This document shows, in pieces, positions 12,043 to 61,506 of a stretch of 64,000 bases of DNA; position 1 is the stretch's first letter, and each line of letters begins with the position of its first letter. The notes beneath the pieces were generated by a model. That model made no database searches. It was given only the letters and a program-made list of their open reading frames with translations, and was not told the origin of the DNA. The position numbers and the translations under genes are program-made. Source of the DNA: Mobula hypostoma (taxonomy: Eukaryota); contig NC_086101.1 in the NCBI RefSeq assembly GCF_963921235.1, forward strand, positions 27,962,001 to 28,026,000, written 5' to 3'.

Positions 12043-12106
12043 ATGGAAGCGTCCTTGAGAGCGTTGTTGATAGTGTTCGTCTTCCAGCGTGGAGAGGCCT
12101 CCGCAT
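12043..12106 (+). CDS. Non-classical MHC class I gene A, exon 1 (signal peptide)
   Basis: MEASLRALLIVFVFQRGEASA, phase-1 donor T|GTGAGT; homologous to gene B leader (both end ASA); in frame with the alpha1 exon. Confidence 0.85.
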
Positions 12107-18478: not shown

Positions 18479-19039
18479 GTGAGTCCCCCATCTCCAATGT
18501 TTATTCCCATTTTACCAATTGAAGCCATCCTGAGGCTGAATCTGTGCTTTTTGGGCTGCAGTCAGAGCGCGAGGTCATTTGTTGGTGATACAGTATGAGG
18601 TTTAAAAGGAGCTTGGGAGAATTTGGTTTTCTTTTGCAGGCTTCAATCAGCGCAAGAAGTCTTCAATGATAATGCAGCACAAGGTTTAAGAAGAGTTCAG
18701 GTGCTTTTGGCTTTTGTTTTGGGCAGGCTACGATCAGTGCAAGGCCAATAAATAGAAAGGTGTAAGCAGAGTGGACCTTGTTGGAGCGGGGCAGTGTTGG
18801 AGTGATCCAGCTTTGGCTTAACAGACAGCGGTGAGAACAGATTTGGACAAGCACAGATGCAGGCTCTAAGTAATTTCTGATCAGTGTTTTTTTCCCTTCT
18901 GATGATACATATCTAGTGCACTGAGAATGGAGCTGAGGTAGTGGAATGTTCTTTATTTGAGATGTGGGAACTCTGAGAGACTACCAGTCACCCTGATAAC
19001 TACAACTACACAAAATGCATTGAGCCACTTCTCCTTAGA

Positions 19040-22000
19040 GACCATGTTAAGAAACTGGGGATGCAGATAGATGAACTGCACCTTATACAGACGTGATAGA
19101 TAGGAGCTCCAGAGAGGTAGTCACCCCTAAGTTGCAGGAGACCGGTACCTGGGTGACTGTCAGGAGAGGGAGAGAGAATAGGCAGCCAGTGCTATTCCCC
19201 TCTCTAATAAGTGTACTGCTTTGGATGGCGCCCCAGGGACAGCTGCAGTGACCAGGTCTCTGGCACTGAGTATGACTGTAGCTTAGAGAGGAAGGTGGGA
19301 GAAGAGGAATGTAGTAGTAATAGGACATTCCTTAATTAGAGGAGCAGAAAGCAGATTTCGTGGATCTGAAAGAGACACCTGGACGGCATATTGCCTCCTA
19401 GATGCCGTGATCAGAGATGTCTCAGATAGGGTCCATTGTATTCTGAAGGGGAAATTGAACAGCTGGAAGTCATGATACCTATTGGTACCAACAACTTAAG
19501 TGGGAAAAGGGAGGAAGTCCTGAAGAGAGAATATAGGGAGGTAGGTGGAAAGCTGAAAAGCTGGACCTCCGGGGTGGCAAACTTGATTGCTGCTTATGTC
19601 ACATGTAAGCAGAGGGAAGAACATGATGATGTAGTAGATGAATGTGTGGCTGAGGAATTAGTGCAGGGGCTAGAGTTTCAGATTTTTGGATCATTGGGCT
19701 CTCTTCTGGGGAAGGTATGACTTGTACAAAAAGGACAAGTTACACTGGAACCCAAGGGGGACCAATAGTCTTGTGGGCAGTGTTACGTACCCCGTAACTG
19801 GGTTGCCAAACCAGCAGAAATGGATCACTCAGTTGGAGTCTGGAGTACTAGAACTAAGAAAGTTTTATTAAAGAAACAAGCAACACAGTAATCGAAAGGA
19901 TAATAAATGCAACAGTTCAGCGATGATAAACACACATGTGCACAGAATTAAGATAACAGCATCAATCAAGCTCTATCGTTGTCTAGGGGTAAATGACCAA
20001 ACTTCAAAGTGACTCAAAGTTCAGTCCAGTTTAGTAGTTCAGTTCGCAGTAATCGTTGCCATGGCGACAGACAACGTTGGGGGAGAGAGAGAGAGAACAG
20101 GAACAACTGATCATTCAGACACGGCTTCACTCACAGACCGGCGATATTGCTCACAAGCAGCTTTTGGGCAGATCCTTGGTGATGTCACCTGAGGTCACCG
20201 ACTGTGACCCCTCCTCCAGATGCGGTCGATCCTCTGCAGTGAACCCAGCACCCAGGCAAGGGCGGACACACACCGGGTTCCCGCTGATCGTACCTTTCCA
20301 CCCTGGCCGTTGTCTGGTACTTCCCACCGACTCGTGAGAGGCATACCGCTTCCAGGGTCTCGTTACCTCGGGTGGCGTGTGTGTCCTGCCTTAGTGAACC
20401 GGTCCCTTTTTATCCCCCTGCTGGGGTATCGCCTGTCCATCACTTCAAACAGTTCAAGGTTCAAAGGGGGGGAGCCGCTCCAGACAGCTCTCTACACATC
20501 TCCAGGTGCTGTTTCATTGTGTCCCTTATCTCTCTCTTGAAGACAGGTGGCAGACCAACTGCTGATCACACTGGACAGCTAACACCTTATCTATGTGTAT
20601 TCATCACAGCAGGTTTGCTAGAGTTGTTGGGGAGGATCTAAACTGATTAGGCAGGAGGGTGGGAGCTGGACTGATAGGGCTGAGGATGGGGAATCGGTAT
20701 ACAACTGGATGCAGTGAGACCGTGAAAAAGGACAGGCAAATGATGGGGCAAAATCACAGTCAGTGGAATGGGTTAAAGTTTAACAAGGGCCAAAATCAAG
20801 AAGATTGAGGAACACAGGACTGAAGGTGTTATATTTGAATGCATGCAGTATACGGAATAAGGTAGCTGATCTTGAAGTGCAGTTAGAGATTGGCAGGTAT
20901 GATGTTGTGAGCATCACTCAGTATTGGCTAAAAGAGGATCATAGTTGGGAGCTTAACGTCCAAGGATATACGTTGTATTGAAAGGACAGCCAGATAGGCA
21001 GAAGGGCTGGGGTGGTTCTGTGGGTAAAAAATGAAATCAAATCCTGAGACAGAGGTGACATAGGATTGGAAGGTATAGAATCCTTGTAGGTGGAGTTAAG
21101 AAATTGCAAGTATAAAAGGACCCTGGTGGAAGTTATATGTAAGCCTCTGAACAGTAGCCAGGATGAGGGTCACAAGTTACAATGAGAGATAGAAATGGCA
21201 TGCAAAAAGGACAATGTAATGATAGTAATGAGGGATTTCAATATGTTGGTAGATTGTGCTGGATTTCAAGAGAGGGGATTTGTAGAATGCATATGAGATT
21301 GATTTTTAGCGCAGCTTGTAATTGACCTCAATAGGGAATGGCAATTCTGGATTGTGCGTTACATTATGGCCTAGATTTGATTAGGGAGCTTAACGTAAAG
21401 GAACACTTAGGAGAGAGTGATCACAATATGATAGAATTTACCCTGCAGTTTGAGAAGGAGCTAAGGTACGACGTGTCAGTATTACAGTGTAGGACAGGCA
21501 ATTACAGAGGCATGAGAGAGGAGCTGGCCAAAATTGATCGTAACGGGTCACTAGCAGAGATAACAGCTGAACAGCAATGGCTGGAGTTACTGGGGGAAAT
21601 TCAGAAGATGCAGGAAAGATACATCCTACAGACAAAGAAGTATTCTAAAGAGAGGATGAAGTAACTGTGGCTGACAGGAAATCAAATTCAGCATAAAAAC
21701 TAAAGTGGGTGCATATAATATATGTAGCAAAAATTATGGGGAAGATAGAGGATTTGGGAGCTTTCAAAAGCCAACCGAAGGCAACTAAAAAGGCCATAAA
21801 GAGAGAAAAGATGAATTATGAAGATAAGGTAGCCAATAATATAAAAGAGGATGCAACATGTTTTTTTAGATGTATAAAGGGTAAAAGGAGAGAGAAGAGT
21901 AGATATCAGACTACTGGAAAATGACACTGGAAATAGTGGACGAACTTAGTATGTATTTTGCATCAGTCTTCACTGTGGAAGACACTAGCAGATTGCCAGA

Positions 22001-23533
22001 AATGAGAGAGTGTCAGGAGGCAGAAGTGAGTGTCATTGCTATTACTAAGTGTAGGGTGCTGAAAAGTCTGAAGGAAGATAAGTCACCTGGACCAAATGGA
22101 CTACACCCCAGGGTTCTAAAAGAGTTACTTGAGATTATGAAGGCATTAGTAATGATCATTCAAAAATCAATCGATTCTGGAATGATTCCTGAGGACTAGA
22201 AAATTACAAATGTCACTCCATTCTTTTGGAAGGAGGGAAACAGAAGAAAGGAAATTATCTGCCAGACTGACTTCAGTGGTTGGAAAGATGTTGGAGGCTA
22301 TTATTAAGGATGGTGTTTCAGGGTACTTGGACATACGTGATAAAATAGACCAAAGTTGGCATGGTTTCCTCAAGAGGAAATCTTACCTGACAAATCTGTT
22401 GGAATTCTTTGAGGAAATACCAAGCAGTATAGACAAAGGAAAGTCAGTAGATTGTGTTTTCTTGGACTTTCAAAGGCCTTTGACAAGGTGCCACACATGA
22501 GACTGCTTAACATGATAAGAGCCCATGGTATTACAGGAAAGATACTAGCATGGATAGAACACTGACTGCCTGGCAGGAGTCAAAGAGCAGAAATAAAGGG
22601 GGCCTTTTCTGGTTGGCAGCCGATGACAAGTGGTGTAATGCAGGGGTTGGTCCTAGGACTTTTTTATGTTATATGTCAATGATTTGGATGAAGAAATTGA
22701 TGGCTTTGTGGATAGCTAGATGGGTGGATAGGGTTAAAGAAGCACAGTGTCTGCTGAAGCTCTGAAGCAGATTGGGAGAATGGGCAAAGGAGTGGTATAT
22801 GAAATATAGTATAGGGAAGTGCATGGTCATGCTCTTTACAAGAAGGAGAAAGTGTGTGGACTGTTTTCTAAATGGGAGAAGATTTAAAAATCAGAAGTCC
22901 AAATTGACTTGGGAGACATCGTGCAGGGTTCCTTAAAGGTTAATTTGCAGAATGGGTCTGTGGTGAGGAGGGCAAGTGTAATATTAGCATTCATTTTGAG
23001 AGGATGAGTATACAAAAGCAAGGATGTAATGTCGTGGCTTTATGAGGCATTGATCAGACTACGCTTGAAGTATTGGAGATGGTGAGAGGAGGTTCATGAG
23101 AACAATCCCAGGAATGAAAGGGTTAATTCATTAGAAGCATTTGATGGTTCTGGGCCTGTAATTTAGAAGAATGAGTGGGGATCTCATTGAAACAAATAAA
23201 ATATAAAAAGACCTGGATAAAGTGGATGTGGAGAGGATGTTTCCTATTGTGGGAGAGTCAAGGGCCAGAGGGCACAGTCTCAAAAGTGAGGGATGAGGAA
23301 AAATTTCTTTAGCCACAGGAATCTATGGAATTCATTGCCACAGCCAGCTGTGTAGGCCAAGCCACTGGGTATATTCAAGGCAGAGGCAGAAAGTTCTTGA
23401 TTAATCAGGGTGCCAAAGATTACCAGAAGAAGACAGGAGAACTGGGTTGAGAGAGATAATAAATCAGCCATAATGGAATGGTGGCAGATGCAATGGGCCG
23501 AATGGCCTAATTCTGCTCCTATATGTTATGGTC
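19040..23533 (+). mobile_element. CR1 LINE, long and degenerate (ORF1 esterase region, EN, RT), interrupted by a solo LTR; ends approximate
   Basis: VMIPIGTNN, HLGESDHNMIEF, KSPGPNGLHPRVLKE, LTSVVGKMLE, SYLTNLLEFFEE motifs with many stops and frameshifts. Confidence 0.85.
19781..20608 (-). mobile_element. Solo LTR of the same family as 105-964
   Basis: TGTTACGTACCCC start, high identity to LTR 105-964, ends ...CATCACA; 4-bp TSD GCAG (19777-19780, 20609-20612). Confidence 0.92.
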
Positions 23534-24050
23534 TTATTAGGTACACACTGTATGCCTGCTCTTTAATGCAAGTACCTAATTAGTCAATCATGTGGCAGCA
23601 CCTCGATGCATAAAAGCATGCAGACATGGTCAACAGGTTCAGTTGTTTTTCAGACCAAACACCAGAATGGGGAAGAAATGTGATCTGAGCGACTTTGACC
23701 ATGAAAATGATTGTTGGTGCCAGATGGGGTGGTCTGACTATCTCAGAAACTGCTGATCTCCTGGGGTTTTCATGTGCAACAGTCTCCAGAAGTTACAGAG
23801 AATGGTGCGAAAAACAAAAAGCATCCAGTGAGCAGCTGTTCTGTGGGTGAAAATGCCGTGTTAATGAGAGAGGTCAGAGGAGAATGGCCGGACTGGTTCA
23901 AGTTGACAGGGAGGTAACAGTTGCTCAAATAATCAACGTTTCAACAGTGGTGCGCAAAAGAGCATCTCTGAACGCGCAGCACGTAGACCCTTGAAGCGGG
24001 TTGGCCTGTGGGGCGGCAGCAGAGCAACACACCAGGTTCCACTGAGTGTA
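23534..24050 (+). mobile_element. Tc1-like deletion derivative
   Basis: TTATTAGGTACAC start, transposase N-terminal remnant, CCACTGAGTGTA end; second copy at 52480-53004. Confidence 0.7.
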
Positions 24051-25064
24051 GGTGATCCCAGGTTTCCCAGTCATTTCAGTGGGTAGGTGGGTAGAGGACA
24101 GAACAAAGCAGTACAGGAACAGGCCCTTTAACCCGATATATTGGTGCCGTACACAACGTTGAACTAAGTTAAAACACTTTTGCCTCTTTATAAGAGACTA
24201 TAAAATATATAGGAACAGAATTTGGCCATTTCACTCCTCAAATCTGCTCTGCTATTCAGTTCTGACCAACGTTTTTCAGCTCCATTTGCCTGCTTTCTCA
24301 ATGTAATGCTTAACTCCTCACCTATCCACTTACCAAACTCTGCCTTAAATACACCCAGTGGCTTGGCCTCCGCAGTCCTCTGAGACAATTGATTACTCTT
24401 ATTCTGCCCCTCATATTATCTTTCCACTTTCCCCTTTTTACCTTGCTTGCATAATTTTAGAACCTCTTGCAGTTCTCCCCACAGCTTCCGATGCTCCAAA
24501 GAGAACAATCCCAAGTTCGTTGAATTTCCGCTTAACGGCAAATATCCTCTTTCCGGGAAGCATCCTGGTGATCATCTTCTGCGCCTTCTCCAAAGCCTCC
24601 ACATCTTTCCTATAATGGGGCAATCAGAATTGTACACAATACTGCAAGTGCAGCCTAATCTTTCTTCATAACTCCTTTAGTCTTAAACTCAATACCCTGA
24701 ACAATGAAGGAAAGCCATCTTTTCCAGACTATACTGAGAAATTTCTTTCTGTAAGCTTAAACTCCAAAATCCTCCTGCCATTAAGGTGCAAGATACATGT
24801 ATTCGAAAAACAAAGAAACACTCAAATGGCAAAATAGTACAACTGTGACTGACAAGGGAAGTCAAAACTAATGTAAAAGCAAAAGAGAGGGCATACAACA
24901 AAGCAAAATTTAGTCAGAAGCCAGAGGATGTCGTTTAAAGTTAAATTAGATAGATATATGGATAGGAAAGGAATGGAGGGTTATGGGCTGAGTGCAGGTC
25001 AGTGGGAATAGGATAGGGTAAGAGTTCGGCACAGACAGAAAGGGACGAGATGGCCTGTTTCCGT

Positions 25065-26002
25065 TGTCATGTGTGAAGCCAAGCAGAGCTGCAGACGGAT
25101 GATGTTAATGAGAGAGATAACGAGAGACAACGGAGAGCCATTCAAAATGCTAATAAGAGAGAAGAGAGAGATAATGAGAGAGAGACACATAATTCAGTAT
25201 GTTGGCGTCTGCCACAGACAGTTTGCTTTGAACCTGAACTGAATCCTGCTGAGACAATAGGAAGTGTGAAGTTTGATGGACAGGTGATAGCCCATCAGGG
25301 GGATAAAAATAGCGGGTTTTCTAAGGCACGGGACACACGCCACGAGACCCTGGAAAGAGCATTGTGCCCCACAAGTTGGTGGGAGTTTGGAAGACCGATT
25401 CGTGGGAATCGGTCAGAGGCTCACAGGGTGTAAAGGTACGACCAGTGGGGAGATGTTGTGTGTCCGCCCTTGCCTGGGTGCCGGCTTCACCATGGAAGAA
25501 CGGTCGCATCCGGACCGGAGGGGTCACAGTCGGTGACCACAGCGGGATCGGAAGGCGTCGAAAGGTTTGCCTGAAACCTCATCTATCTATCTATCTGTCT
25601 ATCTATCTATCTATCTGTCTTTCTGTCTATCTCTCTCTCTATCTCTCTATCCCTCTCCCTCCCTCCCTCCCTCCCTCCCCCCTCCCCCCTCCCCCCTCCC
25701 TCCCCCTCCCCCCCCAACTGTGCAACAACAGCGATTATTTCGAACTGCACTACACTGAACTGAACTCTGCTTCACCTAAGTCTGATCATTTTACCCCTAG
25801 ACTGCGATAGAGCTTGGTTGATTCCTATTACCCTGTGTCTGTGTATACTATCATTGCTAACCTGTTACATTTATATCCTTGCGGTTAGTGTACTGTATTA
25901 CTTATTTTTGTTAATAAAACTTTATTAGTTTCTAGTAATCACAGACTCCAACGAGTGTTCCATTTCTACTGGTTTGACAACCCAGTTACGGGGTATGTAA
26001 CA
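25065..26002 (+). mobile_element. Solo LTR, diverged family member, opposite orientation, inserted in a CR1 3' tail
   Basis: TGTCATG...TGTAACA; right end is the reverse complement of the LTR start at 105; 4-bp TSD CCGT (25061-25064, 26003-26006). Confidence 0.88.
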
Positions 26003-27909
26003 CCGTGCTGTAATTGTTATATGGTAATATAGGATTAGGAAGCTTTTAGAAACCTACAAGGAGCAATTAAAAGAGTCATTAGAAGGGAAAAGATGAAATA
26101 TGAAAGCAAGCTAGCAAATAATATCAAAGCGGATAATGAAAGCTTTTTCAAGAATGTAAAAAAATATAAGAGAGATGAGAGTAGCTATAGGGCTGGAAGA
26201 GAAATAACGGGGGACAAGCAGATAGCTGATGAACTAAATGAGTATTTTGTGTCAGTCTTCACTGTGGAAGACACTAGCAGTGTGCCAGATGTTGAAGGGT
26301 GTGAGGGAAGAGAAGTGAGTGCAGTTACTATTACAAGGTGCACAAAAAGCTGAAAGACCCAAGGCTACATAAGTTACCGGGACCAGATGAACTGCACCCT
26401 CGGGTTCTGAAAGAGGTAGCAGTTGAGATTGTGGAGGCGTTATTAATGATCTTCCAAATGTCATTGGACTCTGACATGACTTGAGGAAGCTGATGAAGGT
26501 GATTGATGAGAACAGTACAGTAATTGTCTACATAAACTTGCAGTAGCATTTGACAAGATCTCTCATTGGAGGCTGATCCAGAAAATTAAGATGCAGGGGA
26601 TCTAATTTGATCTGCCCCAATTTAATTCTTCTCAAGGTCCAGATTTATCCATAACTATCTTAAACTGTGAGGAACACACACAATATGCTGGAGGGACTCA
26701 GCAGGCTAGGCAGCATCTATGGGAAAAGAACAAGCAGTTGACGTTTTGGGCCAAGAGCCTTGGCCAGGACTGGTAAAGGAAGAGGTCAGACTGAGAAGGT
26801 GGGGGGAGGGAAGGAAGACGTACAAAGCGGAAGGTGAAAGATGAAACCTGGATAGGGGGAGGGGTGAAGTAAAGAGCTGGGAAGTTGATTAGGGAAAGAG
26901 ATAAAAGGCTGGAGAAGGGGGAATCTGATAGGAGAGGATAGAAGACCATGGAAGAAAAGGAAGAGGGAAGAGTACCAGCAGGAGGTGATGGACAGGTAAG
27001 GAGACTAGGTGAGAGAGGGTAACAGGAATGGGAAATGGTTTTACCTATCACCTCCACCTTGTACGTCTTCCTCCCCTCCCCCCACCTTCTTACTCTGACT
27101 TCTCTTTCTTTTCAGTCTTGATGAAGGGTCTCGGTCTGAAACGTCAACTATACTCTTTTCCATAGATTCTGCTTTAGTCTGCTGAGTTCCTCCAGTACTT
27201 TGGGTGTGTTGTTTTGGATTTCCAGCATTTACAGATTTTCTTGTGTTTGTAAAAACCTTAAGGAGTTGTGATCACACTTCCCAAAATACCCTCTGATTAA
27301 AAGACAGGATCGGTGCTTCAAATGTAGTAGTGTAGTGGGTGAGACTTTGGACCAGGGGTTCCCAACTCGGGGTCCACTGACCCCTTGCTCGATGGTATTG
27401 GTCCATGGTGTAAAAAAGATTGGTAGCCCCTGCAGTCACAGTTCTGCAGACACATTGCTTATAATTTGAAAGCTAAATTTTATTCATGAAAAGGTATTTA
27501 GGGAATGGTAGATAATAAAACTTTTCTCATGGCATAAGGCTGAGATTTAGGGGGACAGCTGAGAGGTTTAGAGTGGACCTGGGAAGGATTTTTTTCACCC
27601 AGAAGCGGCTTGGAAGCCAGAGCATACTGCCTGAGGGGGTGGTGGAGACAGTGACTGTCATAAATGCTAAAAAAAAGTCTGGACCAGCTCTAAAATCACT
27701 AAGACACTGAAGGTTACAGATCAAATGCTGATAAATCGGGTCTGTATTTATTAGATCAGCATGGAGATGGTGGGCCAAATGGGCTTTTCCTCTGCTCTGC
27801 AATTCCATACGGATAGTCTTGTTTTTTAGACGATGTGGCTGCTTCTCAAAACACACAGAACAAGTTCCAAATCATGGTAAACACCCATCGACTGTTTGTG
27901 TGCTGACAG

Positions 27910-28182
27910 GTTTCCATACCCTGCAGCAGATATTTGGCTGTGAACTGAAGGAGGACGGGACCTCAAGTGGCTTCTCCCATTACAGCTGGGACGGCGAGGA
28001 TGTGATGCGCTTTGACCAGGGCCACATGTTCTGGGTGACACCATCATCGTGGGCACAGAACATTAAAAACCAGTGCACTGGTGATGAGGTCCGTGTTAAG
28101 AGACTGAAGGACTTCCTGGAGAAGGAGTGTCTGCAGTGGCTGCAGAGATACACAGAATACGGAGAGAGGGAATCGCGAGTGG
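27910..28182 (+). CDS. Gene A exon 3 (MHC class I alpha2 domain)
   Basis: GACAG acceptor, G|GTGAGT donor, 273 bp; FHTLQQIFGCEL...YSWDGED...FLEKECLQWLQRY with the C101-C164 pair. Confidence 0.95.
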
Positions 28183-28780
28183 GTGAGTGGTGGCGAGGGG
28201 TAGATCCCAGGGTTGTGGGTCAGGAAATGAAACAATGAGGGTGGGGGGAGGTGAGTTCTAACAGTGATGGAGTGAGGGATGGGAGAGTGGTGATTGCTGA
28301 GAGGGTCTCTCTCTGAGTGGTATGAGAGTGTTGGGGGAATCCTGTCTGTAGGGGATTCTCTCTCTCTGTCTGGGTTGGGCTCTACCAGATTCTCTGTTCC
28401 TCTCAGACTCTGTGTGGGTGGGGTGTTCACTGTCTCTCCATCTCTCTCTCTCTCACCATCCCGCCCTCAGTCGCCATCTCTCCCTCTTCCTGTCCCTCAC
28501 ACTCTTCCTGTCGTTGAACCTGCAAACTTCTGTCACCTGCCTTGTCCCTGCCCTATTCCTTAACAGCAGCTCAAGTATCGCCCACTCTCTCATTGCGACT
28601 TCTATGTACTGAGCAAGGAAGCTTTCCTGAATACATTTGATAAACTCTATCACATCCAGTCCTTTTACAGTAGAAGTCCCAGTCAATCTGTAGAAAATTA
28701 AAGTCACCTCTATCTTGATCTCTAAACATTCTTTTCTTTTCTCCCCCTCCCCCTCCTTCTATCTCTCTTCCGTTCCCCAG

Positions 28781-29044
28781 TGCCTCCCCAGATGACGATC
28801 ACGCCTTCGGCCAACAGCCTGCACCTCTCCTGCTTGGCCACCGGCTTCCACCCCCCATCTATCGAGGTGACCCTGTTGAGGAATGGGACCATCTTACCCG
28901 AGACCCAATCCAGTGGGCTCCTGCCCAATCACGACGGCACCCACCAGATCCAGAAGTGGGTGCTGGTGGACCCCGCGGACCCGGGCCCGTTCTCCTGTCG
29001 GGTGGAGCACAGCGGACTGGAGGACGCCGTCACCCGGATTTACA
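28781..29044 (+). CDS. Gene A exon 4 (alpha3, Ig C1 domain)
   Basis: CCCCAG acceptor, A|GTGAGT donor, 264 bp; LSCLATGFHP...LPNHDGTHQ...FSCRVEHSGL. Confidence 0.95.
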
Positions 29045-29222
29045 GTGAGTTGATCGGTCATCCTGAGGGAGGGTCCGGCTGCACTCGCGGGTGAGGAGTG
29101 GGAGTTGTGTGGGGAGGTGTCTGAGGGGGGCCCACAGCTGTGCAGGGGGAGATTCTCAAACACCTCACAAAGGGAGGTCGAGCCAAGGGTGTCCTGGGAC
29201 AGGACAGAGCAGGGCTGGTATA

Positions 29223-30792
29223 CAGGTTTCCCCCGCCATCCGAAGGTAGAGTGTTCCTATGAAACGGTTTGTAAGCCGAAATGTCATAAAGCAAAGAAGC
29301 AATTACCATTTATTTACATGGGAAAATTTTGTGAGCGTTCGCAAACCCAAAAACAACCTACCAAATCATGCCAAATAACATATAAAACCTAAAATAACAG
29401 TAACATATAGTAAAAGCAGGAATGATATGATAAGTACACAGTCTATATAAAGTAGAAATACTTCTCTACAACGATTGCCTGCACAGATCTCCGTAGTGAA
29501 AATCTCACGTAAGTGCTTTCAGCAGAAAATCTCACGCAAGCGCTGTTGGCATAAATGCGCTCTCCAGTAACCTGTAAACTATGAAGCTGCCAAATCTACC
29601 AAATAACACATAAAAATACACAGCCTATATAAAGTAGAAATAATGTATGTACAGTGAGTATCACTTACCGGAATTGGGAAAACAGTGCTGAGCACACTGA
29701 TGATGGTGTGTTAGGCTGAGTCGTCGCAGGCTGGGTGGTGCAGTGGCCCCCACCCTCCGGGCCGCCGACCCGATACATTGCCGCGAAGAACACAGCGGTA
29801 GCCGGGAGGCAAACAGCACATCGTTAAGAAAAAAGCCAAAATAAATATGCTAATTAATTAGGTGCTGCCCGGCACGTAAATGTCGGCGCAGATTGCCAAT
29901 TGCATCGCCTCTGATCTGGGTCGACAATTACGTGCCAGGCGGCACCTAATTATTTAGCATGTTTATTTGGGCTTTTTTCTTAAAGATTTGCTGTGTGCCT
30001 CCCAGCTACCACTGCGTTCTTCGCGAGTCGGTACAGTATCTGTCCGGGGCCCGGCTGTCGGGGTGGTGGGACACGGGGGTGTCATCTCATCGTCGATCAG
30101 GGCAGGCAACTCATCTTCTCCTATGACTGCCCGCCTCGATGTCGAAGGTCGAGGTTCGTCGTCTGCTGTGGCTGATGTGGAAGGCTTGCTTGACTGCTGA
30201 GCCTCGCGCATTTTTCTATCATACAGTTGTTTGTAAGCACTCAAACCATCCTGCAAATATCCCCTAAAGCTACGTACCCTTTCAAAATTAAAGTCGTACT
30301 TTATCATTGCAGCGAAAATCTCACGCAGCTGCTTCACTTTCTGCATTCGGTTTCGATTGTTATCCTTTCCTCTTCCAATTGCATCAGCTCTTCATCTATC
30401 AGTTCTTGGTCATGGGATGCCAAAACCTCTTCAACATCATCTTCGTCAACTTCCACAAGCCAAACTCACTTTGTCCTTGCTTTGTTCACCACGATCGAAA
30501 TGCTTATTTATGTCTAGTTTTACGCTAAGTGTAACACCCTTACTCTTTCAGGCTTTTCCGACACCTTAGAACTCATCTTGCTAACGGTTGCTCAATGCAA
30601 CGTCTTTAAGCAATGCCGTTGCGAATCCGGGGCAGAGCTGCCCCTTTTATGGCGCGCTGTTTTTTTTGTCGCGCGCTGCCTTTCTTCGTAACAGTGAAAA
30701 CACCTTCTGAAAGCGAAAACAGGGTACTAATGTAGGTCTTTCGTAACAGTGAGGTTTCGTAAAGTGAACGTTCAAAAAGCGGGGGACACCTG
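29223..30792 (-). mobile_element. Tigger/pogo-like DNA transposon
   Basis: TIR CAGGTTTCCCCCGC / GCGGGGGACACCTG (1 mismatch), TA on both sides, transposase C-terminal remnant (about 30100-30570, minus). Confidence 0.85.
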
Positions 30793-31022
30793 TATCCTAA
30801 ATTATTTCAGTGCAGGTCAGTGGGTTATTCCAGGGCAGATTGGTGTATTCCGTATTCTGACAGGTGGCCAGACCTTGGTCATTACAGTCTGATCTGGTGT
30901 GCTGTGTTATTACAGTCGTGGCCAGTGCTTCTTGGCAAATTACCACACAGGGTGGTGTGCCCTTGGTGATTGTGGCCTGTGTAACTGTGAACTTCCTACA
31001 CCCTCTCCAATTCTCTCCCCAG

Positions 31023-31118
31023 AGCGGGAAGCTCAATCCCGGATCCTATTAATAGTCGGGCTCCTGGCCATCCTTGTGGTTCTCGCCATCACCATTGGTG
31101 CTGTGTACAGGTGGCGAG
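31023..31118 (+). CDS. Gene A exon 5 (transmembrane)
   Basis: CTCCCCAG acceptor, G|GTAGGG donor, 96 bp; KREAQSRILLIVGLLAILVVLAITIGAVYRWR. Confidence 0.92.
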
Positions 31119-39600: not shown

Positions 39601-40600
39601 CTGTTTACGAATCTTAGTAATTTGACGTTTAGCCGAATCAAATTTCAATTGTTTAGCCAGTAATTTACCCGATTTATCACTATGAATATAAAAATCACTT
39701 CTAGTTCTCATTAATTGATTTTCAATCGAGGATGTTAATAATAAGCAACATACATCAAAGTTGCTGGTGAACGCAGCAGGCCAGGCAGCATCTATAGGAA
39801 GAGGCGCAGTCGACGTTTCAGGCCGAGACCCTTCGTCAGGACTAACTGAAGGAAGAGTGAGAAAGGGATTTGAAAGTGGGAGGGGGAGAGGGAGATGCAA
39901 AATGATAGGAGAAGACAGGAGGCGGAGGGATAGAGCCGAGAGCTGGACAGGTGATTGGCAAAAGGGATATGAGAGGATCATGGGACAGGAGGTCACCCCC
40001 CACCTTGTCTTTCTCCCCGGACCTCCTGTCCCATGATCCTCTCGTATCCCCTTTTGCCTATCACCTGTCCAGCTCTTGGCTCTATCCCTCCCCCTCCTGT
40101 CTTCTCCTATCATTTTGCATCTCCCCCTCCCCCTCCAACTTTCAAATCCCTTACTCACTCTTCCTTCAGTTAGTCCTGACGAAGGGTCTCCGCCTGAAAG
40201 GTCGACTGCACCTCTTCCTACAGATGCTGCCTGGCCTGCTGCGTTCACCAGCAACTTTGATGTGTGTTGCTTGAATTTCCAGCATCTGCAGAATTCCTGT
40301 TGTTTATGTTAATAATAAGCTATGTTCTAATTGGAGTTCAACTCCGTGTTTGTACAGCTCCTTACTGGGAGAAATAGCATATTTTTTATCGACTTCATTA
40401 ATTTTATCAACCAACAGAAGTATTTCATTGTTAATACGTCTTTTCAAACCAGCCGAATAGGAAATAATTTGACCACGGATATAAGCTTTAAAGGCGTCCC
40501 AAACAGTTCCGTTGGAAACTTCTTCCGTAGTATTAGTTGAAAAGAAGAAATCAATCTGCTCCTTTACAAATTTGACAAAGTCCTGATCACTGCTAATGGC
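36625..40600 (-). mobile_element. L1 LINE, 5'-truncated ORF2 (frameshifted), interrupted by Penelope; ends approximate
   Basis: ORFs 37002-38393, 38434-38922 (GTRQGCPLSP, LYADD) and 40304-40600; SLTHMFWSC; A-rich 3' end on the minus strand. Confidence 0.9.
39747..40305. mobile_element. Penelope-like inverted terminal pair inside L1 ORF2
   Basis: Inverted structure; 15-bp duplication ATGTTAATAATAAGC (39732-39746, 40306-40320). Confidence 0.88.
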
Positions 40601-41358: not shown

Positions 41359-41431
41359 ATGGAGCGGACGAGTTCTCGCAGAGTGGTGGGGCTGATAGTG
41401 TTGGCCTTCCTGTGCGACGCCGCCTCCGCAG
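41359..41431 (+). CDS. Non-classical MHC class I gene B, exon 1 (signal peptide)
   Basis: MERTSSRRVVGLIVLAFLCDAASA, phase-1 donor G|GTGGGT; in frame with the alpha1 exon. Confidence 0.87.
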
Positions 41432-44475: not shown

Positions 44476-44730
44476 AATCTCACTCTCTCCGAATTCTCCT
44501 GACGTCCACGACTGAGATTCTGGATTTTCCACAGTTAGTGGCTGTCACTAATGTGGATAGTGTCCAGTTTGTGGTTTACGACAGTAAGCGGAAGTTGGTT
44601 CCCCAGGAGCAGTGGATGGTGAAGAGCGAGGGGGCCGAATGGCATAAGAAGTTGTCACTTGCTGAGGAGTGGGAGAGGACCCAGAAAAAACTTATTCTCT
44701 TCATAATGTCTTTGACCAATCAGTTGGGTG
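44476..44730 (+). CDS. Gene B exon 2 (alpha1 domain)
   Basis: TTTGTTTCAG acceptor, G|GTGAGT donor, 255 bp; ESHSLRILLT...FPQLVAVTNVDSVQFVVYDS...QWM...LTNQLG. Confidence 0.92.
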
Positions 44731-45764: not shown

Positions 45765-47775
45765 AAATGTAAACACGACGAACTCTGAAGATGCTGGAAA
45801 TTCAAGCAACACACATCAAAGTTGCTGGTGAACACAGCAGGCCAGGTAACATCTCTAGGAAGAGGTACAGTCGACGTTTCGGGCTGAGACCCTTCGTCAG
45901 GACTAACTGAAGGAAGATCTAGCAAGAGACTTGAAAATGGGAGGGAGAGGGGGAGATCCAAAATGATAGGAGAAGACAGGAGGGGGAGGGATGGAGCCAA
46001 GAGCTGGACAGGTGATTGGCAAAATGGATATGAGAGGATCATGGGACAGGAGGCCCAGGGAGAAGGAAAAGGGGGGAGGGGGGGAAAAACCCAGAGGATG
46101 GGTAAGGGGTATAGTCAGAGGGATAGAGGGAGAAAAAGGAGAGAAAGAAAAGAATGTGTGTATATAAATAAATAACGGATGGGGTACGAGGGGGAGGTGG
46201 GGTATTAGCGGAAGTTTGAGAAGTCAACGTTCATGCCATCAGGTTGGAGGCTACCCAAACGGAATATAAGGTGCTGTTCCTCCAACCTGAGTGTGGCTTC
46301 TCTTTACAGTAGAGGAGGCCATGGATAGACATGTCAGAATGGGAATGACATGTGGAATTAAAATGTGTGGCCACTGGGAGATCCTGCTTTCTCACCCTGC
46401 CCTCAAGTTTACCTGGTCCATTTCCGACACCTCCCTCCCCTTTCTAGATCTTTCTGTCTCTGTCTCTGGAGACAGCTTATCTACTGATGTCTACTATAAG
46501 CCTACTGACTCTCACAGCTATCTGGACTACTCCTCTTCTCACCCTGTCTCTTGCAAAAATGCAATCCCCTTCTCGCAATTCCTCCGTCTCTGCCGCATCT
46601 GCTCTCAGGATGAGGCTTTTCATTCCAGGACGAGGGAGATGTCCTCCTTTTTTAAAGAAAGGGGCTTCCCCTCCTCCACCATCAACTCTGCTCTCAAACG
46701 CATCTCCCCCATTTCACGCACATCTGCTCTCACTCCATCCTCCCGTCACCCCACTAGGAATAGGGTTCCCCTGGTCCTCACCTACCAACCCACCAGCCTC
46801 TGGGTCCAACATATTATTCTCCATAACTTCCGCCACCTCCAACGGGACCCCACCACTAAGCACATCTTTCCCTCCCCCCTCTCTCTGCTTTCCGCAGGGA
46901 TCGCTCCCTACATGACTCACTTGTCCATTCGTCCCCCCTATCCCTCCCCACTGATCTCCCTCCTGGCACTTATCCTTGTAAGCGGAACAAGTGCTACACA
47001 TGCCCTTACACTTCCTCCCTCACCACCATTCAGGGCCCCAAACAGTCCTTCCAGGTGAGGCGACACTTCACCTGTGAGTCAGCTGGGGTGATATACTGCA
47101 TCCGGTGCTCCGATGTGGCCTTCTATATATTGGTGAGACCCGACGCAGACTGGGAGATCGTATTGCTGAACACCTACGTTCTGTCTGCCAGAGAAAGCAG
47201 GATCTCCCAGTAGCCACACATTTTAATTCTACATCCCATTCCCATTCTGATATGTCTGTCCACGGCCTCCTCTACTGTCAAGATGAAGCCACACTCAGGT
47301 TGGAGGAACAACACCTTATATTCCGTCTGGGTAGCCTCCAACCTGATGGCATGAATATTGACTTCTCTAACTTCCACTAATGCCCCACCTCCCCCTCATA
47401 ACCCATCCGTTATTTATTTATATACACAAATTCTTTCTCTCTCTCTCCTTTTTCTCCCTCTGTCCCTCTCACTATACCCCTTGCCCATCCTCTGGGCTTT
47501 TCCCCCCTCCCCCTTTTCCTTCTCCCTGGGCCTCCTGTCCCATGATCCTCTGATATCCCTTTTGCCAATCACTTGTCCAGCTCTTGGCTTTATCCCACCC
47601 TCTCCTGTCTTCTCCTATCATTTTGAATCTCCCCCTCCCCCTCCCACTTTCAAATCTCTTACTAGCTCTTCCTTCAGTTAGTCCTGACGAAGGGTCTTGG
47701 CCCGCAACGTCGACTGCACCTCTTCCTAGAGATGCTGCCTGGCCTGCTGCGTTCACCAGCAACTTTGATGTGTGT
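45765..47775. mobile_element. Penelope-like element: inverted terminus plus + strand RT C-terminus and GIY-YIG
   Basis: HPALKFTWSIS...; intact GIY-YIG ORF 47105-47380 (LYIGETRRRLGDRIAEHL). Confidence 0.88.
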
Positions 47776-47862
47776 TGGTGGGATAGTTTATGTAGGTTTA
47801 CAAAATACTTGACATAAAAGTGCACAGAATAACAACAAAATAACATACATATTTAAGTCACA

Positions 47863-54612: not shown

Positions 54613-54885
54613 AAATCCACACACTCCAGCAGGTGATTGGCTGTGACCTGAGGGAGGATGGGACCACGAAAGGCTTCACTCAGTACAGCTGGGATGGAGA
54701 GGACCTGCTGAGCCTGGACAAGGACCACACAGAGTGGGACACATTTGTAATGTGGGCAGAGAGAATTAAACACCAGTGGGATCAGGACATGGTCAACATT
54801 GGGAAATGGAAGTACTTCCTGAAGGTGGACTGTGTCCGGTGGCTGAGGAAGTTCCTGGCTTACGGAAGGAGGCAACTGCGAGTGG
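54613..54885 (+). CDS. Gene B exon 3 (alpha2 domain)
   Basis: TTTTGACAG acceptor, G|GTGAGT donor, 273 bp; IHTLQQVIGCDL...YSWDGED...FLKVDCVRWLRKF. Confidence 0.95.
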
Positions 54886-55283: not shown

Positions 55284-55547
55284 AACCTCCCCAGGTGACC
55301 TTCACCCTGTCAGCCAAAACCAGCACCCTCTCCTGCTTGGCCACTGGCTTCCGCCCCTCATCCATTGAGGTGACCCTGTGGAAGAATGGGACCATCCTCC
55401 CTGAGGCACACTCCACTGGGCTCCTGCCCAATCACAATGGCACATACCAGATCCGGAAGTGGGTGCAGATTGATCCCGCGGACCCGGCATCATTCTCCTG
55501 CCGGGTGGGGCACAGCGGACTGAAGGATCCCATCATCTGGAATGACG
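55284..55547 (+). CDS. Gene B exon 4 (alpha3, Ig C1 domain)
   Basis: CCCCCCAG acceptor, G|GTGAGC donor, 264 bp; LSCLATGFRP...LPNHNGTYQ...FSCRVGHSGL. Confidence 0.95.
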
Positions 55548-55689
55548 GTGAGCTGGTCGGTTGCCATGGGGGAGGGTCCAAGAGCACACGTGTGCGCTCA
55601 CGGGTGGGGCAGTCTGTGGTGGGGGCGAGGTGTCTGAGGGTCCCAGAGTTGTGCTGGGGGAGATCCTCAGATACTCAGGTAGAGTCACA

Positions 55690-58600
55690 GAAAAGCAGAG
55701 CATAGAAACTGGCCCTTCGGGCCATCTAGTTCATGCTGAGCCATTGGAACTGCCAACTCCCATCGACCTGCACAGGGACCATAGCCCTTCTTATCCCTAC
55801 TATCCAAACTTCTCTTAAACATTGAAATCGAGCTTGCATACACCACTTGTGCTGGCAGCTCATTCCATATTCTCACCACCCTCTGAGTGAAGTTTCCCTT
55901 CATGTTCCCCTTAAACTCTTCACCTTTCACCCTTAACCCATGACCTTTAGTAGTCCCACCTAACCTCAGTGGAAAAAGCCTGCTTGCATTTGCCCTGTCT
56001 ATACCCTCATAATTTTGTATACCTTTATTAAATCTCCTCGCAATCTGTTACATTCCAAGGAATAAAGTCCTAACCTATTTAACATTTCCTTATAACTCAG
56101 ATCTTCCAGGCATGGCAACATCCTTGAAAATCTTCTGTCTCTTTCAACCTTAGTTCATCTTTTCTGTAGGTAGGTGACCTGAACTGCACATAATGCTCCA
56201 AATAAGGTCGCACTAACGTCCTATACAACTTCAACATAACACTCAGTACATTGATTTACAAAGGCCAATGTGCCAAAAGCTTTCTTTATGACCCTATCTA
56301 CCTATGATGCCACTTTCAATGAATTGTGGTCTCCATTCACAAATCCTTTTGTTCTACCGCACTCCTCAGTGCCCTAACATTCATTCTATAAAGCCTACCC
56401 TGGTTGGTCCTACCAAAGTACAACACCTCGTACTTGTCTGCATTAAATTCCATCAGTCCATTTTTCCAGATGGCCTGCAATCTATTTCAAGTACCGAGAG
56501 TCTTCCTCGCTGTCCGCTACAACCCAGTCTTGGTGTCATCTGCAAATTTGCTGATTCAGTTAACCACATTTTCATCCAGATCATTGATTGATATAGGTGA
56601 GAAACAACATTAGACCCAGCACTGATCCCTGCAACACTTTACTAGTCACAGGCCATCAGTCAGAGATGCAACTGTATACTACCACTCTCTGGCTTCTCCC
56701 ACAGCCAATGTCTAATCCAATTTACTACCTCATCTTGAATGCCAACCGACTGAACCTTCTTGACCAACCTCCCATGTGGGACCTTATCAAATACCTTACT
56801 AAAGTCCATGTAGACAACATCCACTGCAATGCCTTCATCAATTTTCCTGGTAACTTCCTCAAAAAATTCTGTAAGATTGGTTAGACACTACCTACCATGC
56901 ACAAAACCATGCTGATTATACTTAGTAAGTCCATATCTATCCAAATACTTATATATCCAGTCCTTTGGAATACTTTCCAATAACCTTCCCACTACTGATG
57001 TCAGGCTCACCGGCCTATAATTTCCTGGTTTCTGTTTAGAACCTTTCTTAAACAGCAGAACAATATTGACTATCCTCCAATCCTCTGGTACCTCTCCGTC
57101 ACTAAGAATGATTTAAATATATCACCTAGGGCCCAGCAATTTCAGCACTTGCCTCCCATAGGGTCTGAGGAAACACCCTGTCAGGGCCAGGGGATTTTAA
57201 TTTTTAATTTATACTTTATACTTTATTGTCGCCAAACAATTGATACTAGAACGTACAATCATCACAGCGATATTTGATTCTGTGCTTCCTGCTCCCTGGA
57301 TTACAAATATTAAATATTAAAAACAGTAAAAATTAGTAAATATAAAAAAATTAAATTATAAATCATAAATAGAAAATAGAAAAATGGAAAGTAAGGTAGT
57401 GCAAAAAAAACCAAGAGGCAGGTCTGGATATTTGGAGGGTACGGCCCAGATCCAGGTCAGGATCCGTTCAGCAGTCTTATCACAGTTGGAAAGAAGCAGT
57501 TCCCAAATCTGGCTGTACGAGTCTTCAAGCTCCTGAGCCTTCTCCCGGAGGGAAGAGGGACGAAAAGTGTGTTGGCTGGCTGGGTCGTGTCCTTGATTAT
57601 CCTGGCAGCACTGCTCCGACAGTGTGCAGTGTAAAGTGAGTCCAAGGACAGAAGATTGGTTTTTGTGATGTGCTGCGCCATGTTCACGATCTTCTGCAGC
57701 TTCTTTCGGCCTTGGACAGGACAATTTGCCCTAAGGACAGCAAACACAACTTCCTCTGTAATCTATACAGGGTTATACAGAGTCCATGAAGTTGATGCTA
57801 CTCTGCTTCACTTCTATTGACTCTGTGTCCGTCTCCTGAGTAAAAACAGATGCAAAGAATTCATTTAAGATCTCCCCCACCTCTTTTGCTCTGTGGAATT
57901 CCTTGGGATTCTTCTTCACCTTGTCTGCCAGAGGAACTTTCTGCCTTCTTTTACCCTTCCCAATTTCTTTCTTAGGTGTTCTCTTTCATTTCTTGTACTC
58001 CATAAGCTCCTCATTTGTTCCTCCCTGTCTATACCTGCTTTTCTTAACCAGGGCCTCAATATCTCTTAAAAACCAAGGTTCCCTGCCCTGTTATCTTTAC
58101 CTTTTATTCTGACAGGCACATACAAGCTTTCTACTCTAAGGGTTTCACTTTTCAAGGCATCACGCCTTTACCAGAAAATAGCCTGTCCCAATTCACACTT
58201 GCCAGATCCTTTCTGATGCCATCAAATTTGGCCTTTCTTCAATTTAGGATCACAATCTGCAGACCAGACCTGTCTTTTTGCATATTGACTTTGAAGCAAA
58301 TGGCAGTATGATCACTAGATGCAAAGCGTTTCCCTACACAAACTTCTGTCGCCTGCCCTGTCTCATTCCCTAATAGCTGATCAATTATTGCACACTCTCT
58401 CATTGGGACTTTTATGTACTGATTAAGGACACGTTCCTTACGACATTTGACAAATTCTATCCCATCTAGTAACTTTACAGTATGGGAATATTTGGAAAGT
58501 TAAAAATCACCTACTAAAACAATCTTATATTTCTTGCAACAGTCTGCAATCTCTCTACAAATTTGTTCCTCTAAATCCCTCAGACTGTTGGGTGATCTGT

Positions 58601-60290
58601 AATATAGCCACATTTATATGGTCTTGTTACTCAGTACCACCCACAACACCTCACTAGGTGAGTTCTCCAGTCTGTCCTGACTGAGCACTGCCTTGATATT
58701 TTCCCTGACCAATAACGCCACCCCTCCTTGTTTAATCCCCCCCACCATTCTGTCACATCTAAAATAATGGAACCCCAGAATATTGAGCTGGCAGTCCTGC
58801 CCCTCCTGCAACCAAGTCTCACTCATGGCTAGCTTATCATAATTCCATATGTTGATCCAAGCCCTGCAGTCATCTGCCTTTCCTATAAACTTCTTGCATT
58901 GAAATATACAAGCTCAGAACATTAGTCACATCATGTTCAATCTTTTGATTCCTGACTATATCTGAGGTCTTTATAACAACGTATCTCCACAATCTCTGCA
59001 CTATCTGCTCTGGCACTCTGGTTCACATCCCCCTACAACTCTAGTTTTAGCACCCCGCCCCCTTCCCGTGCAGTATGGCAAACTTTCCCATTAGGATATT
59101 AGTCCCCATCCAGTTCAGGTGCAAACAATCTCTTCTAAACAGAACCCAGCTTCCTTGGAAGAGAGCCCAATGATCCAAAGCTCTAATGTCCTGCCTCCTT
59201 CACCAGCTCCTCAGCCGCATATTAAGTTATATATTCTTCCTATTTCTGGCCTCAGTAGCACGTGGTGGAGGTAGCAATCCTGAGATCACAAGCCTGGAGG
59301 TCTGCCAACTCCCAACTCCCTGAGCTCACTTTGCAGACCCTCGTCACTCGTCCTACCCCTGTCATTGGTACCTACATGGACCAGAACCTCTGGCTATTCA
59401 TCCCCTCACTTAAGAATGCTGAGAACTCAATCCAAGATATCCCAGACCCTAGCACCCGGGAGGCAACATACCATCCAAGAATCTCATTCTCGTTCACGGA
59501 ACTTCCTTTCTGTTCTCCTAACTAATGTATCGCCTGTCACCACAGCTTGCTTCTTCTTCCCCACCCCCCCTTCCCATTTGAGTTTCAGTGCCAGAGACCT
59601 GACCGCTGTGACTTTCCTCTGCTAGGTCAACCCCTCGAACAGTATCTAAAGAGATATACCTGTTGTTGATGGGGATGCCTTGGGGTACTCTGCACTGGCT
59701 GTTTAACCCCTTTCTCCCTCCTGACTGTCACCCAGTTTCCGGTGTCCTGCACCTTGAGTGTAACTACCTCTCTATTAGTCCTGTCTATCACCCCCTCAGC
59801 CTCTCAAATGATCCAGAGTTCATCCAGTTCCAGCTCCAACCCCTCAATGCGGATTGCTAGAAACCGCAGCAGGATGCACTTGTCATCAGGGTCACTGGAG
59901 GTCTCCCTGCCTTCCCACACCACTCAAGAGGAGCATGCCACTATTCTGCCTGGCATCTCTACTGTGCTAACTCAGCAAATGTAAAGAAGGAAGAACAATA
60001 AACTGTTGGGTGGGGGTGGAAACTCTATCTACAGCTTTTTTGCCTTCTCTGACTGAAGCCTCACCTGATGAAGCCTTGAAGAGCTAAAATGTGACCACTC
60101 CAACAGTGGGCACTCTGCTTGCCCCTGCCTTAATTTAATTTGTTCTTGCCAATCTATCCCAAATGCTGATAGGCCACTGCTCAAAGCACTAAACTGCCAT
60201 GAGTCGCTAGCTTTTCGACTCAGTTGGCAAGCCTGAGTGAGCTGCGTCTTCTCAGGGTTCTGATCTCCAGTTTGCTGCTGCTCAAAGTGA
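55690..60290 (-). mobile_element. Degenerate CR1 LINE segments (with an embedded Rex-like piece at about 57230-57720) in gene B intron 4
   Basis: CR1 3' end at about 55690, RT remnants, SETWLQEG endonuclease motif (58614-58826), ORF1 remnants. Confidence 0.75.
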
Positions 60291-60420
60291 GGTCAAGTCC
60301 CTGGTATCCAGGAACAGGATAGAGCAGGGCTTGGTTTATCCTGCGACAGGGCAGAGCTGTATCTGGGGACAGTACGGAGCAGTGGCAGTTGTATCCGAGG
60401 TGATTACTGCACAGGGTAGA

Positions 60421-60790
60421 GTTCCCTGTGATATTACAGTATAGGGCAGTGTACCCTGTAATATAACAGTATGGTGCCGTGTACCCTGTGATATTTCAGT
60501 ACAGGGCAGTGTACCCTGTATTATTACAGTACAGTGCCGTGTACCCTATATTATTGCAGTACAGTGCAATGTACCCTCTAATATTATGGTACAGGGCAGT
60601 GGGCCCTGTATTATTACAGTACAGGGCAGTGTGCCCTGTAATATTACCATATGGTGCAGTGTACCCTGTAATATTACTGTACGGTGTACTGTACCACTTG
60701 ATATTACAGTACGGGCCAGTGTGCCCCATGGCATTACTGCACGGGGCAGTGTGCCCTGTAATGTTACCACACGGGGCAGCGTACCCTGTG
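60421..60790 (+). repeat. 30-bp minisatellite (about 12 units) just upstream of gene B's TM exon
   Basis: Unit about GTACCCTGTAATATTACAGTACAGGGCAGT, in register every 30 bp. Confidence 0.95.
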
Positions 60791-60838
60791 TGATTGTGGG
60801 GCCTGTGTCTCAGACACCCTCTCTGATTCTTTCTCCAG

Positions 60839-60985
60839 TGCAGGGAACTCAACCCTGGATACAGCCTAACCTGCTGAGTAGCTCCAGCATTTTCAGTGGG
60901 TTGTGCTGGATTCCACTCTTCTTCGGGATCAGGGCCATTTCCGTCATCATTATCCTCATTATCGGTGCCAGCTGCAGAAGGCGAG
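60839..60985 (+). CDS. Gene B exon 5 (connecting peptide + transmembrane) with a 51-bp in-frame insertion
   Basis: CTTTCTCCAG acceptor, G|GTATGG donor, 147 bp = 96 + 51; aligns without gaps to gene A's TM exon outside 60865-60915. Confidence 0.85.
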
Positions 60986-61080
60986 GTATGGCTGGGAAGG
61001 GAACTGGGCAGAGGGAGCAGGGAGGGTGTGGGGAAGGGATAGCTGAGGGTCTGTGGGGGTAGGGGAAGGTTCTGATGCAG

Positions 61081-61112
61081 GAGAGTATCAGCGGCAGCAC
61101 GCTGGTGTACTG
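61081..61112 (+). CDS. Gene B putative exon 6 (cytoplasmic mini-exon, phase 1 to 0)
   Basis: GEYQRQHAGVL, strong donor CTG|GTAAGT, codon-wise similar to gene A exon 6; weak purine-rich acceptor. Confidence 0.5.
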
Positions 61113-61506
61113 GTAAGTGTAATGCTGTTCAGGGCCAGCTACACAGGTTCAGTTACGTGGCTGTCTGTGCGGAGTTCGTCCGTTCTCCCTGTGACCGTGT
61201 GGGTTTCCTTGGGATGTTACAGTTTCTTCCTGCATTACAGAAGTGTACAGATTGGAATTAGTAGGTTGGGGACATGGTATGTGAGTGCTGAAAGCACATC
61301 AACACCTGCAGGCTGCCCCAGTACATATTTGTACTGTGTCTGTCATGGATGTACTTCGCTGTCTGCTTCGAAGGTTACCAGGGAGTGCCGGTATGGGAGG
61401 AGGGGGACGATGGGGCAGGTCGAGTGGAAGGGGACGGGTCTGAGGGAGGTGGGATGGAAAGGTGCAGTTGACCCTGGATCTGATGTGACCAATTTTGCTT
61501 CCCCAG

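Follow-up and report, generated by a model that had tools for sequence, protein, structure and literature searches.

A 51-bp coding insertion resembling a Penelope-like element terminus in the membrane exon of an MHC class I gene shared by devil rays and stingrays

Gene B, one of two tandem MHC class I genes in the window (the whole 64,000-nucleotide stretch of Mobula hypostoma DNA that was analysed), contains 51 extra base pairs within its connecting-peptide/transmembrane (TM) exon. An origin of this segment from a transposable element (TE) is well supported by the sequence comparisons below. We favour, with some caution, the reading that it is an old, fixed insertion of a fragment of a Penelope-like element (PLE), which most likely arose by abortive, 5′-truncated retrotransposition. 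The segment is translated as part of the protein and occurs at the same place in class I proteins of other rays.

The tandem class I genes and the extra 51 bp

Genes A and B are paralogues that both lie on the + strand of the window. Their exons were located by self-comparison, splice sites and tblastn with database homologues, as follows.

12043-12105, 18221-18478, 27910-28182, 28781-29044 and 31023-31118 (+): gene A exons
31023-31118 (+), 96 nt: gene A connecting-peptide/TM exon, which stands in for the insertion-free site
41359-41431 (+): gene B leader exon (tblastn 24/24 to the M. birostris leader)
44476-44730 (+): gene B alpha-1 exon
54613-54885 (+): gene B alpha-2 exon (Pfam MHC_I, E 3.5e-20; best PDB match 6lup)
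55284-55547 (+): gene B alpha-3 exon (Pfam C1-set, E 1.8e-14)
60839-60985 (+), 147 nt, phase 1 at both ends: gene B connecting-peptide/TM exon, with junctions as in mRNA contig L001
61507-61511 (+): coding start of the gene B last exon, which completes an Asp codon and is followed by TAG

The exon plan is one domain per exon with phase-1 introns, followed by the connecting-peptide/TM exon. Pfam MHC_I, the peptide-binding-type domain formed by alpha-1 and alpha-2, was matched at E 3.5e-20 by gene B and at E 1.4e-18 by gene A, and the membrane-proximal Ig domain of alpha-3 (Pfam C1-set) at E 1.8e-14 and E 2.2e-12, respectively; the top PDB match was the MHC class I chain 6lup_A (E 3.8e-21). Each protein is ∼50% identical to shark class I proteins. 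The last exon of gene B was located through L001 and the M. birostris protein P0266, and the cytoplasmic exons of the two genes share a weak 33-bp match at most. The assembled gene B open reading frame (338 aa) is identical to residues 401-738 of the M. hypostoma RefSeq protein XP_062905765.1 (P0269), and the translation of its TM exon is identical to the end of that model. Position 7 of alpha-1, inspected by eye, is Phe in gene A and Leu in gene B, not Tyr. In classical (class Ia) MHC class I molecules, which are polymorphic, conserved residues such as Tyr7 hold the peptide termini.

Several features of the locus were recorded alongside the genes. In XP_062905765.1 (738 aa, 'uncharacterized protein') the two class I genes (12043-31118 and 41359-61511) are fused, whereas the M. 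birostris annotation gives two genes; the fusion probably stems from read-through in the annotation. A run of 292 N lies at 16950-17241, inside the first long intron of gene A. In M. birostris and Hemitrygon akajei a C3/C4-like complement gene is located on the opposite strand downstream of the gene B orthologue, a neighbour that fits the reported C4-class I linkage in elasmobranchs (PMC10751288).

The earlier note on this DNA had reported that the TM exons of the two genes align without gaps except for one 51-bp (17-codon) block in gene B. This was reproduced, with the exon limits corrected to 60839-60985 in gene B and 31023-31118 in gene A. The parts of the block are listed here.

60865-60915 (+): the 17 extra codons as first placed, translating as PNLLSSSSIFSGLCWIP
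60864-60905 (+), 42 bp: core attributed to the PLE 3′ terminus; orientation sense with respect to the element
60855-60863 (+): direct repeat copy 1, CTGGATACA, aligned to the single CGGATCC of gene A
60906-60915 (+): direct repeat copy 2, CTGGATTCCA, at a spacing of 51 nt from copy 1; a candidate target-site duplication

Placement of the insert within the direct repeat is ambiguous, and 60865-60915 is one choice. The extra 51 bp are made up of the 42-bp core and one copy of the 9-bp direct repeat. The flanking repeats that had been described as microhomology, CTGGATACA and CTGGATTCCA, are present, share 8 letters and are spaced by exactly 51 nt; they are better read as an 8–9-bp target-site duplication or as part of a copied template.

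A 30-bp minisatellite with a palindromic unit (12.9 copies, 60403-60789, + strand) ends ∼50 bp 5′ of the acceptor of the gene B TM exon and is context, not part of the insertion. Units akin to it precede the gene A TM exon at ∼30880-30990, and the array is ∼210 bp shorter in a DNA contig of one further organism.

Resemblance of the insert to a Penelope-like terminus

Two copies of the putative source element are central to the comparison.

26646-27246 (no single strand): inverted, outward-facing pair of PLE 3′ ends; the copy most like the insert
13310-15983 (+), 2.7 kb: nearly full PLE copy with an RT-like ORF (659 aa), an in-frame stop, a GIY-YIG-like segment and a 3′ terminus

The match that the earlier note had counted between 60864-60902 and the reverse complement of 26673-26711, 32/39 positions without gaps, is exact as claimed. 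It extends to 36/45 when 60858-60902 is compared with the copy at 26673-26717, and this closest copy is thus 80% identical to the insert over 45 bp. Within the window, blastn gave E 6e-6 to the arm at 26673; the resemblance to the other arm was likewise borne out, with 33/42 positions matching at 27179-27220 (blastn E 2.6e-4). When the 61-mer was compared with 2000 dinucleotide-preserving shuffles, 0/2000 reached the real score of 41.9 bits (mean 23.2, maximum 34.6). The reverse-complement relation merely reflects the inverted, outward-facing arrangement of the pair at 26646-27246, and the insert is in the sense orientation of the element.

The PLE family was sampled as nine termini within the window, and the whole window was searched with three nhmmer profiles built from their last ∼110 bp, with the following results for the gene B exon.

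Profile from the two arms of the best-matching element: E 9e-8, span 60851-60915
Profile from all nine termini: E 2e-4, span 60857-60926
Profile from the seven copies without the best-matching element: E 2.6e-3, span 60857-60922

The exon was the top match outside the family for all three profiles, which argues for homology to the family and not to one lucky copy. The blastn, shuffle and profile results agree with the proposal that a Penelope-type terminus was the source of the extra 51 bp. In two DNA runs compared with 55440-61439, read depth in the 200-bp bin 60840-61039 was hundreds-fold above that of adjacent single-copy bins, and its ratio to the next bin varied among runs; this is suggestive of a high-copy segment in the exon, with a second repeat just downstream as a confounding source of depth.

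The arms of the pair at 26646-27246 are 78.8% alike over 179 bp, and the nhmmer termini within it are located at 26746-26646 (−) and 27138-27246 (+). Seven more terminus copies in the window belong to a sister subfamily of this module. Inverted terminus pairs are found at 26646-27246, 10226-11054, 39726-40305 and 45770-47781; PLE termini are known to form tandem or inverted pairs, with hammerhead motifs paired on opposite strands 100–700 bp apart (PMC4209133). The pair at 10226-11054 is flanked by a 17-bp direct repeat, ACAAATTCCAGGCTCAA, at 10211-10227 and 11046-11062, which is a clear target-site duplication for the PLE family.

The terminus of the copy at 13310-15983 is a module of the insert type, with hammerhead-like boxes and a tail. 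The ORF of this copy matched RVT_1 at E 8.8e-4, below the Pfam cut-off, and the nearest Atlas clusters to it (score 0.97), which carry HTH_animal, DUF8422 and RVT_1, are animal RT families. Pfam GIY-YIG was matched at E 0.013, also below the cut-off; a ...YIGET...R... motif is visible after the in-frame stop, and GIY-YIG is present in 11% of the members of one lower Atlas cluster (rank 24, score 0.93). CTGA(C/T)GA ... GAAAC boxes occur in the termini. The Rfam hammerhead models gave no match to the termini at gathering or permissive thresholds, even at E 10; metazoan PLE hammerheads are minimal variants unlike the canonical ones (PMC4209133). Five of the nine termini have a ∼35-bp tail, three end before the tail at ...GTGTGTTG, and the arm at 26747 is uncertain. 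An optional 30–40-bp 3′ tail, giving two alternative 3′ ends, is a PLE signature (PMC11167929), and the published PLE layout combines RT and GIY-YIG with minimal hammerhead-type boxes in terminal repeats, inverted pairs and the optional tail (PMC4209133, PMC8557442, PMC11167929). Assignment of the terminus as Penelope-type is probable, several of its defining features resting on sub-threshold scores.

Other repeats were seen in the window. A partial copy of the element at 13310-15983 lies at 46392-47777 (92.6% identical). Two 860-bp direct repeats (105-964 and 4223-5082, 99.9% identical) enclose an ORF at 1140-3623 (−) with SCAN and zinc-knuckle domains, an arrangement suggestive of a young LTR retroelement that carries a gag-like gene; a third copy of the 860-bp repeat is located at 19780-20573 (91% identical).

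Carriers, age and route of insertion

The 17 residues are present in 3 of the ∼270 class I proteins that were collected.

M. birostris XP_072115087 (P0266): 95% identical to gene B
Hemitrygon akajei XP_072892083 (P0242): 80% identical to gene B
Product of Logan contig L001, SRR6291316 (P0244), from a further ray: 80% identical to gene B

The insert is absent from gene A, its M. birostris orthologue, two sawfish genes and all shark and other ray class I sequences examined, and a protein search restricted to the TM region of P0266 returned that protein alone. DNA contigs of two further organisms span the gene B exon without a 51-bp gap and thus contain the insert. For a maximum-likelihood tree the TM region was trimmed from most rows (six rows were aligned at full length owing to a mismatch in the trimming pattern). 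The four carriers, including gene B, formed one clade in this tree (100/100), and its sister clade consisted of gene A, the M. birostris orthologue of gene A and the two sawfish genes, all without the insert. A single gain therefore suffices. The pre-insertion state is taken from the paralogues, as an insert-free orthologue of the B lineage (a true empty site) was not found. Gene A, the outgroup proteins and the tree agree with the earlier reading of an insertion in the B lineage rather than a deletion elsewhere. From the single gain, the shared carriers, the synteny and the further contigs we conclude that the insertion is derived, and its distribution among the sequences places it after the A/B duplication and before the split between devil rays and whiptail stingrays. 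The window and L001 show a synonymous divergence of 0.22. A recent insertion is ruled out, as the event predates the Mobula-Hemitrygon split.

We infer the following course of events. The last ∼42 bp of the element, with the tail-less 3′ end, would have been inserted with duplication of an 8–9-bp target, CTGGATNC, most likely through abortive and extremely 5′-truncated target-primed retrotransposition. Because 51 bp amount to 17 codons with no in-frame stop, the gene would have survived. Today the segment is constitutive coding sequence by way of the normal acceptor, and it has drifted at about the pace of the remainder of a loosely constrained exon. Retrotransposition is favoured by three observations taken together: the core homology ends at ...GGGTTGTG, within a few bases of the tail-less terminus end ...GTGTGTTG; either repeat copy can be aligned with the one CGGATCC site of gene A, in keeping with a target-site duplication; and the family has left a 17-bp duplication elsewhere in the window.

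The same PLE terminus could have supplied the 51 bp by another route, as a templated copy made during break repair or template switching (polymerase-theta-type end joining or MMBIR). The GGAT of the exon would have paired with AGAT and GGAT/GAAT, which lie 51–52 nt apart in the terminus, with neither retrotransposition nor a true duplication taking place. We consider such a patch possible, if the less probable route. It would account for an nhmmer alignment that is colinear from 60857 to ∼60922 through both repeats, and for the spacing from AGAT to G(G/A)AT, which equals the length of the indel (51 nt for the main subfamily, 52 nt for the 27138 arm). Repeat copy 2 (CTGGATTCCA) is also similar to the start of the optional PLE tail and matches the tail start of the 27138 arm at 9/10 letters, a likeness left unexplained under pure retrotransposition because reverse transcription of PLEs is published to begin at a site that lacks homology to the target (PMC11167929). 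However, the match within the repeats is short and partly forced, as the exon already had GGAT (gene A). The core also stops where tail-less copies naturally end, which a random template switch need not do, and both repeat copies fit the single site of gene A equally, as expected for a target duplication. The TE-like alignment extends weakly into both direct repeats, as either a templated copy or a target-site duplication would allow, and sequence alone cannot decide between retrotransposition and a templated patch.

Two explanations that dispense with a PLE insertion were rejected. The resemblance could be due to chance, the 17 codons having come from local duplication, slippage or capture from another gene. 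The identity is after all 80% over 45 bp, a good match is found to one element alone in the window, and a version of the motif with 22 specified bases also has a chance match in one bacterial-looking metagenome contig. This origin is nonetheless very unlikely given the window-wide E of 6e-6, the failure of all 2000 shuffles to reach the score, and the independent seven-copy profile, for which the exon is the best non-family match at E 2.6e-3. In addition, nothing else in the window is similar to the insert, and at the 13 sites that differ between Mobula and L001 the TE agrees with one of them at 11. An ancestral origin of the 17 codons, with loss from gene A and from the remaining class I lineages, is in our judgement extremely unlikely: a deletion could also be mediated by the flanking direct repeat, but independent and identical 51-bp losses would be needed in the gene A clade, in sawfish and in all shark and other ray class I examined, and the similarity to a mobile element would be left unexplained.

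The insert is a new example of a known phenomenon and involves no new kind of mechanism. TE exonization into coding exons, such as that of Alu/SINE elements in mammals, usually proceeds from an intronic element that provides new splice sites and an alternative exon. Gene B resembles these cases in that mobile-element DNA is translated in a host protein and retained across species. It differs in that the fragment landed in frame inside an existing constitutive coding exon and in having a Penelope-like donor in place of a SINE or LINE. As in 5′-truncated target-primed insertions of the LINE-1 type (for PLEs, PMC11167929 and PMC8557442), the 3′ end alone is present with a short direct target repeat, and the insert ends at the tail-less form, one of the two natural PLE 3′ ends. 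Unlike these insertions it is extremely short (42 bp), and retrotransposition is here the proposed route; the target duplication would be 8–9 bp, in contrast to 17 bp in the clear PLE example in the window. Templated insertions at repaired breaks, through polymerase theta end joining or MMBIR/FoSTeS, are usually copied from nearby sequence. They share with gene B a short stretch copied from elsewhere and microhomology at both junctions, but such patches have no reason to end at the natural terminus of a transposon.

Gene B offers a clean and datable case of a rare route, direct insertion into a constitutive coding exon rather than intronic recruitment, and Penelope-like elements are seldom credited with coding contributions. 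The insert is a shared derived character of one class I lineage in devil rays and stingrays, and it could help to bring order to the confusing set of nonclassical class I genes in cartilaginous fish.

Splicing and the membrane anchor

Contig L001 is intron-free and joins the leader, alpha-1, alpha-2, alpha-3, the TM exon with its insert, and the last exon, which span >20 kb of the window; it therefore represents a spliced mRNA in which the normal acceptor is used. The insert is included in the RefSeq models of M. hypostoma, M. birostris and H. akajei. Preservation of the frame, as had been claimed, is confirmed by these models of three rays and by the one spliced mRNA contig, all of which are translated from the upstream acceptor. 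Words from alpha-2 and alpha-3 occur at about exonic share in RNA-like runs of the source species.

The insert had also been thought to bring a cryptic acceptor (CATTTTCAG, AG at 60895-60896) whose use would give a product without a TM segment. The AG is present and would shift the frame, but its use is unsupported: it was found in 0/5 M. birostris isoforms and not in L001, and the 20 nt upstream of it are ∼60% pyrimidine as against ∼90% at the real acceptor. Membrane-less isoforms are indeed annotated, but they arise through exon skipping or through an acceptor 5 nt downstream of the normal one (+5 acceptor), not through 60895-60896. Two sites are relevant to the latter.

60842-60843 (+): AG of the alternative acceptor, shifted 5 nt downstream from the normal acceptor, whose reading frame matches the C-terminus of isoform X4 (P0270)
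60867-60869 (+): TAA in the TE-derived core, which terminates the +5-acceptor isoform

M. birostris isoform X4 (P0270), which uses the +5 acceptor, ends ...GNSTLDTA and then stops, and in M. birostris isoform X5 the whole TM exon is skipped. Across the M. birostris models P0268, P0270 and P0271, skipping of the TM exon is annotated for the gene A orthologue as well as the gene B orthologue, and the +5 acceptor for the latter. Since skipping is also annotated for the gene A orthologue (P0268), it is independent of the insert. Isoforms that skip the exon or use the +5 acceptor would yield membrane-less class I chains. MHC class I, to which the host gene belongs, is an immune gene family in which the membrane-proximal region influences display at the cell surface and shedding. 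The length of the connecting-peptide/TM exon varies within the MHC class I family, an example being the GCT repeat in MICA exon 5. There, as in gene B, the equivalent exon tolerates in-frame length change and soluble isoforms arise by skipping, whereas the extra length in gene B has a mobile-element origin and is a fixed feature of more than one genus, unlike a polymorphic microsatellite.

A sequence scan bore out the expectation that both the stalk and the hydrophobic stretch are longer with the insert. By the Kyte-Doolittle scale the best 19-residue membrane core stays in the original part, IPLFFGIRAISVIIILIIG, and the insert contributes ∼10 polar, Ser-rich stalk residues and ∼7 hydrophobic residues ahead of the original membrane helix. 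The added Cys that had been predicted is present in Mobula and confined to it; H. akajei has Arg at this position, and the mRNA contig has Cys one residue earlier. In comparison with L001, dN/dS was 0.74 for the insert and 0.75 for the remaining exon sequence, as against 0.41 for the ectodomain, values that are based on small numbers. As the insert evolves about as loosely as the remainder of the exon, it looks tolerated like its surroundings rather than strongly selected or specially conserved.

Within 60916-60985 the membrane helix of gene B contains an Arg, in the motif GIRAIS, which is common to M. birostris and H. akajei. The cytoplasmic tail is RRRD in the window, where TAG lies two codons into the last exon, RRRDWWFD in M. 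birostris, and long and Ser-rich in H. akajei. An Arg in the TM segment together with a short tail recalls adaptor-coupled receptors. With the TE-derived extension of the stalk and hydrophobic segment, the GIRAIS Arg and a tail of 4–8 residues, the Mobula protein has the layout of a charged-TM adaptor receptor, and the PLE fragment might on this ground have had a part in reshaping the membrane anchor in a nonclassical class I lineage specific to rays, beyond being merely tolerated; we regard this as very unlikely. If it were true, a scrap of a retroelement would have helped to turn a molecule of the antigen-presenting type into an adaptor-coupled or shed one. The PLE fragment also provides the stop codon of one annotated membrane-less isoform.
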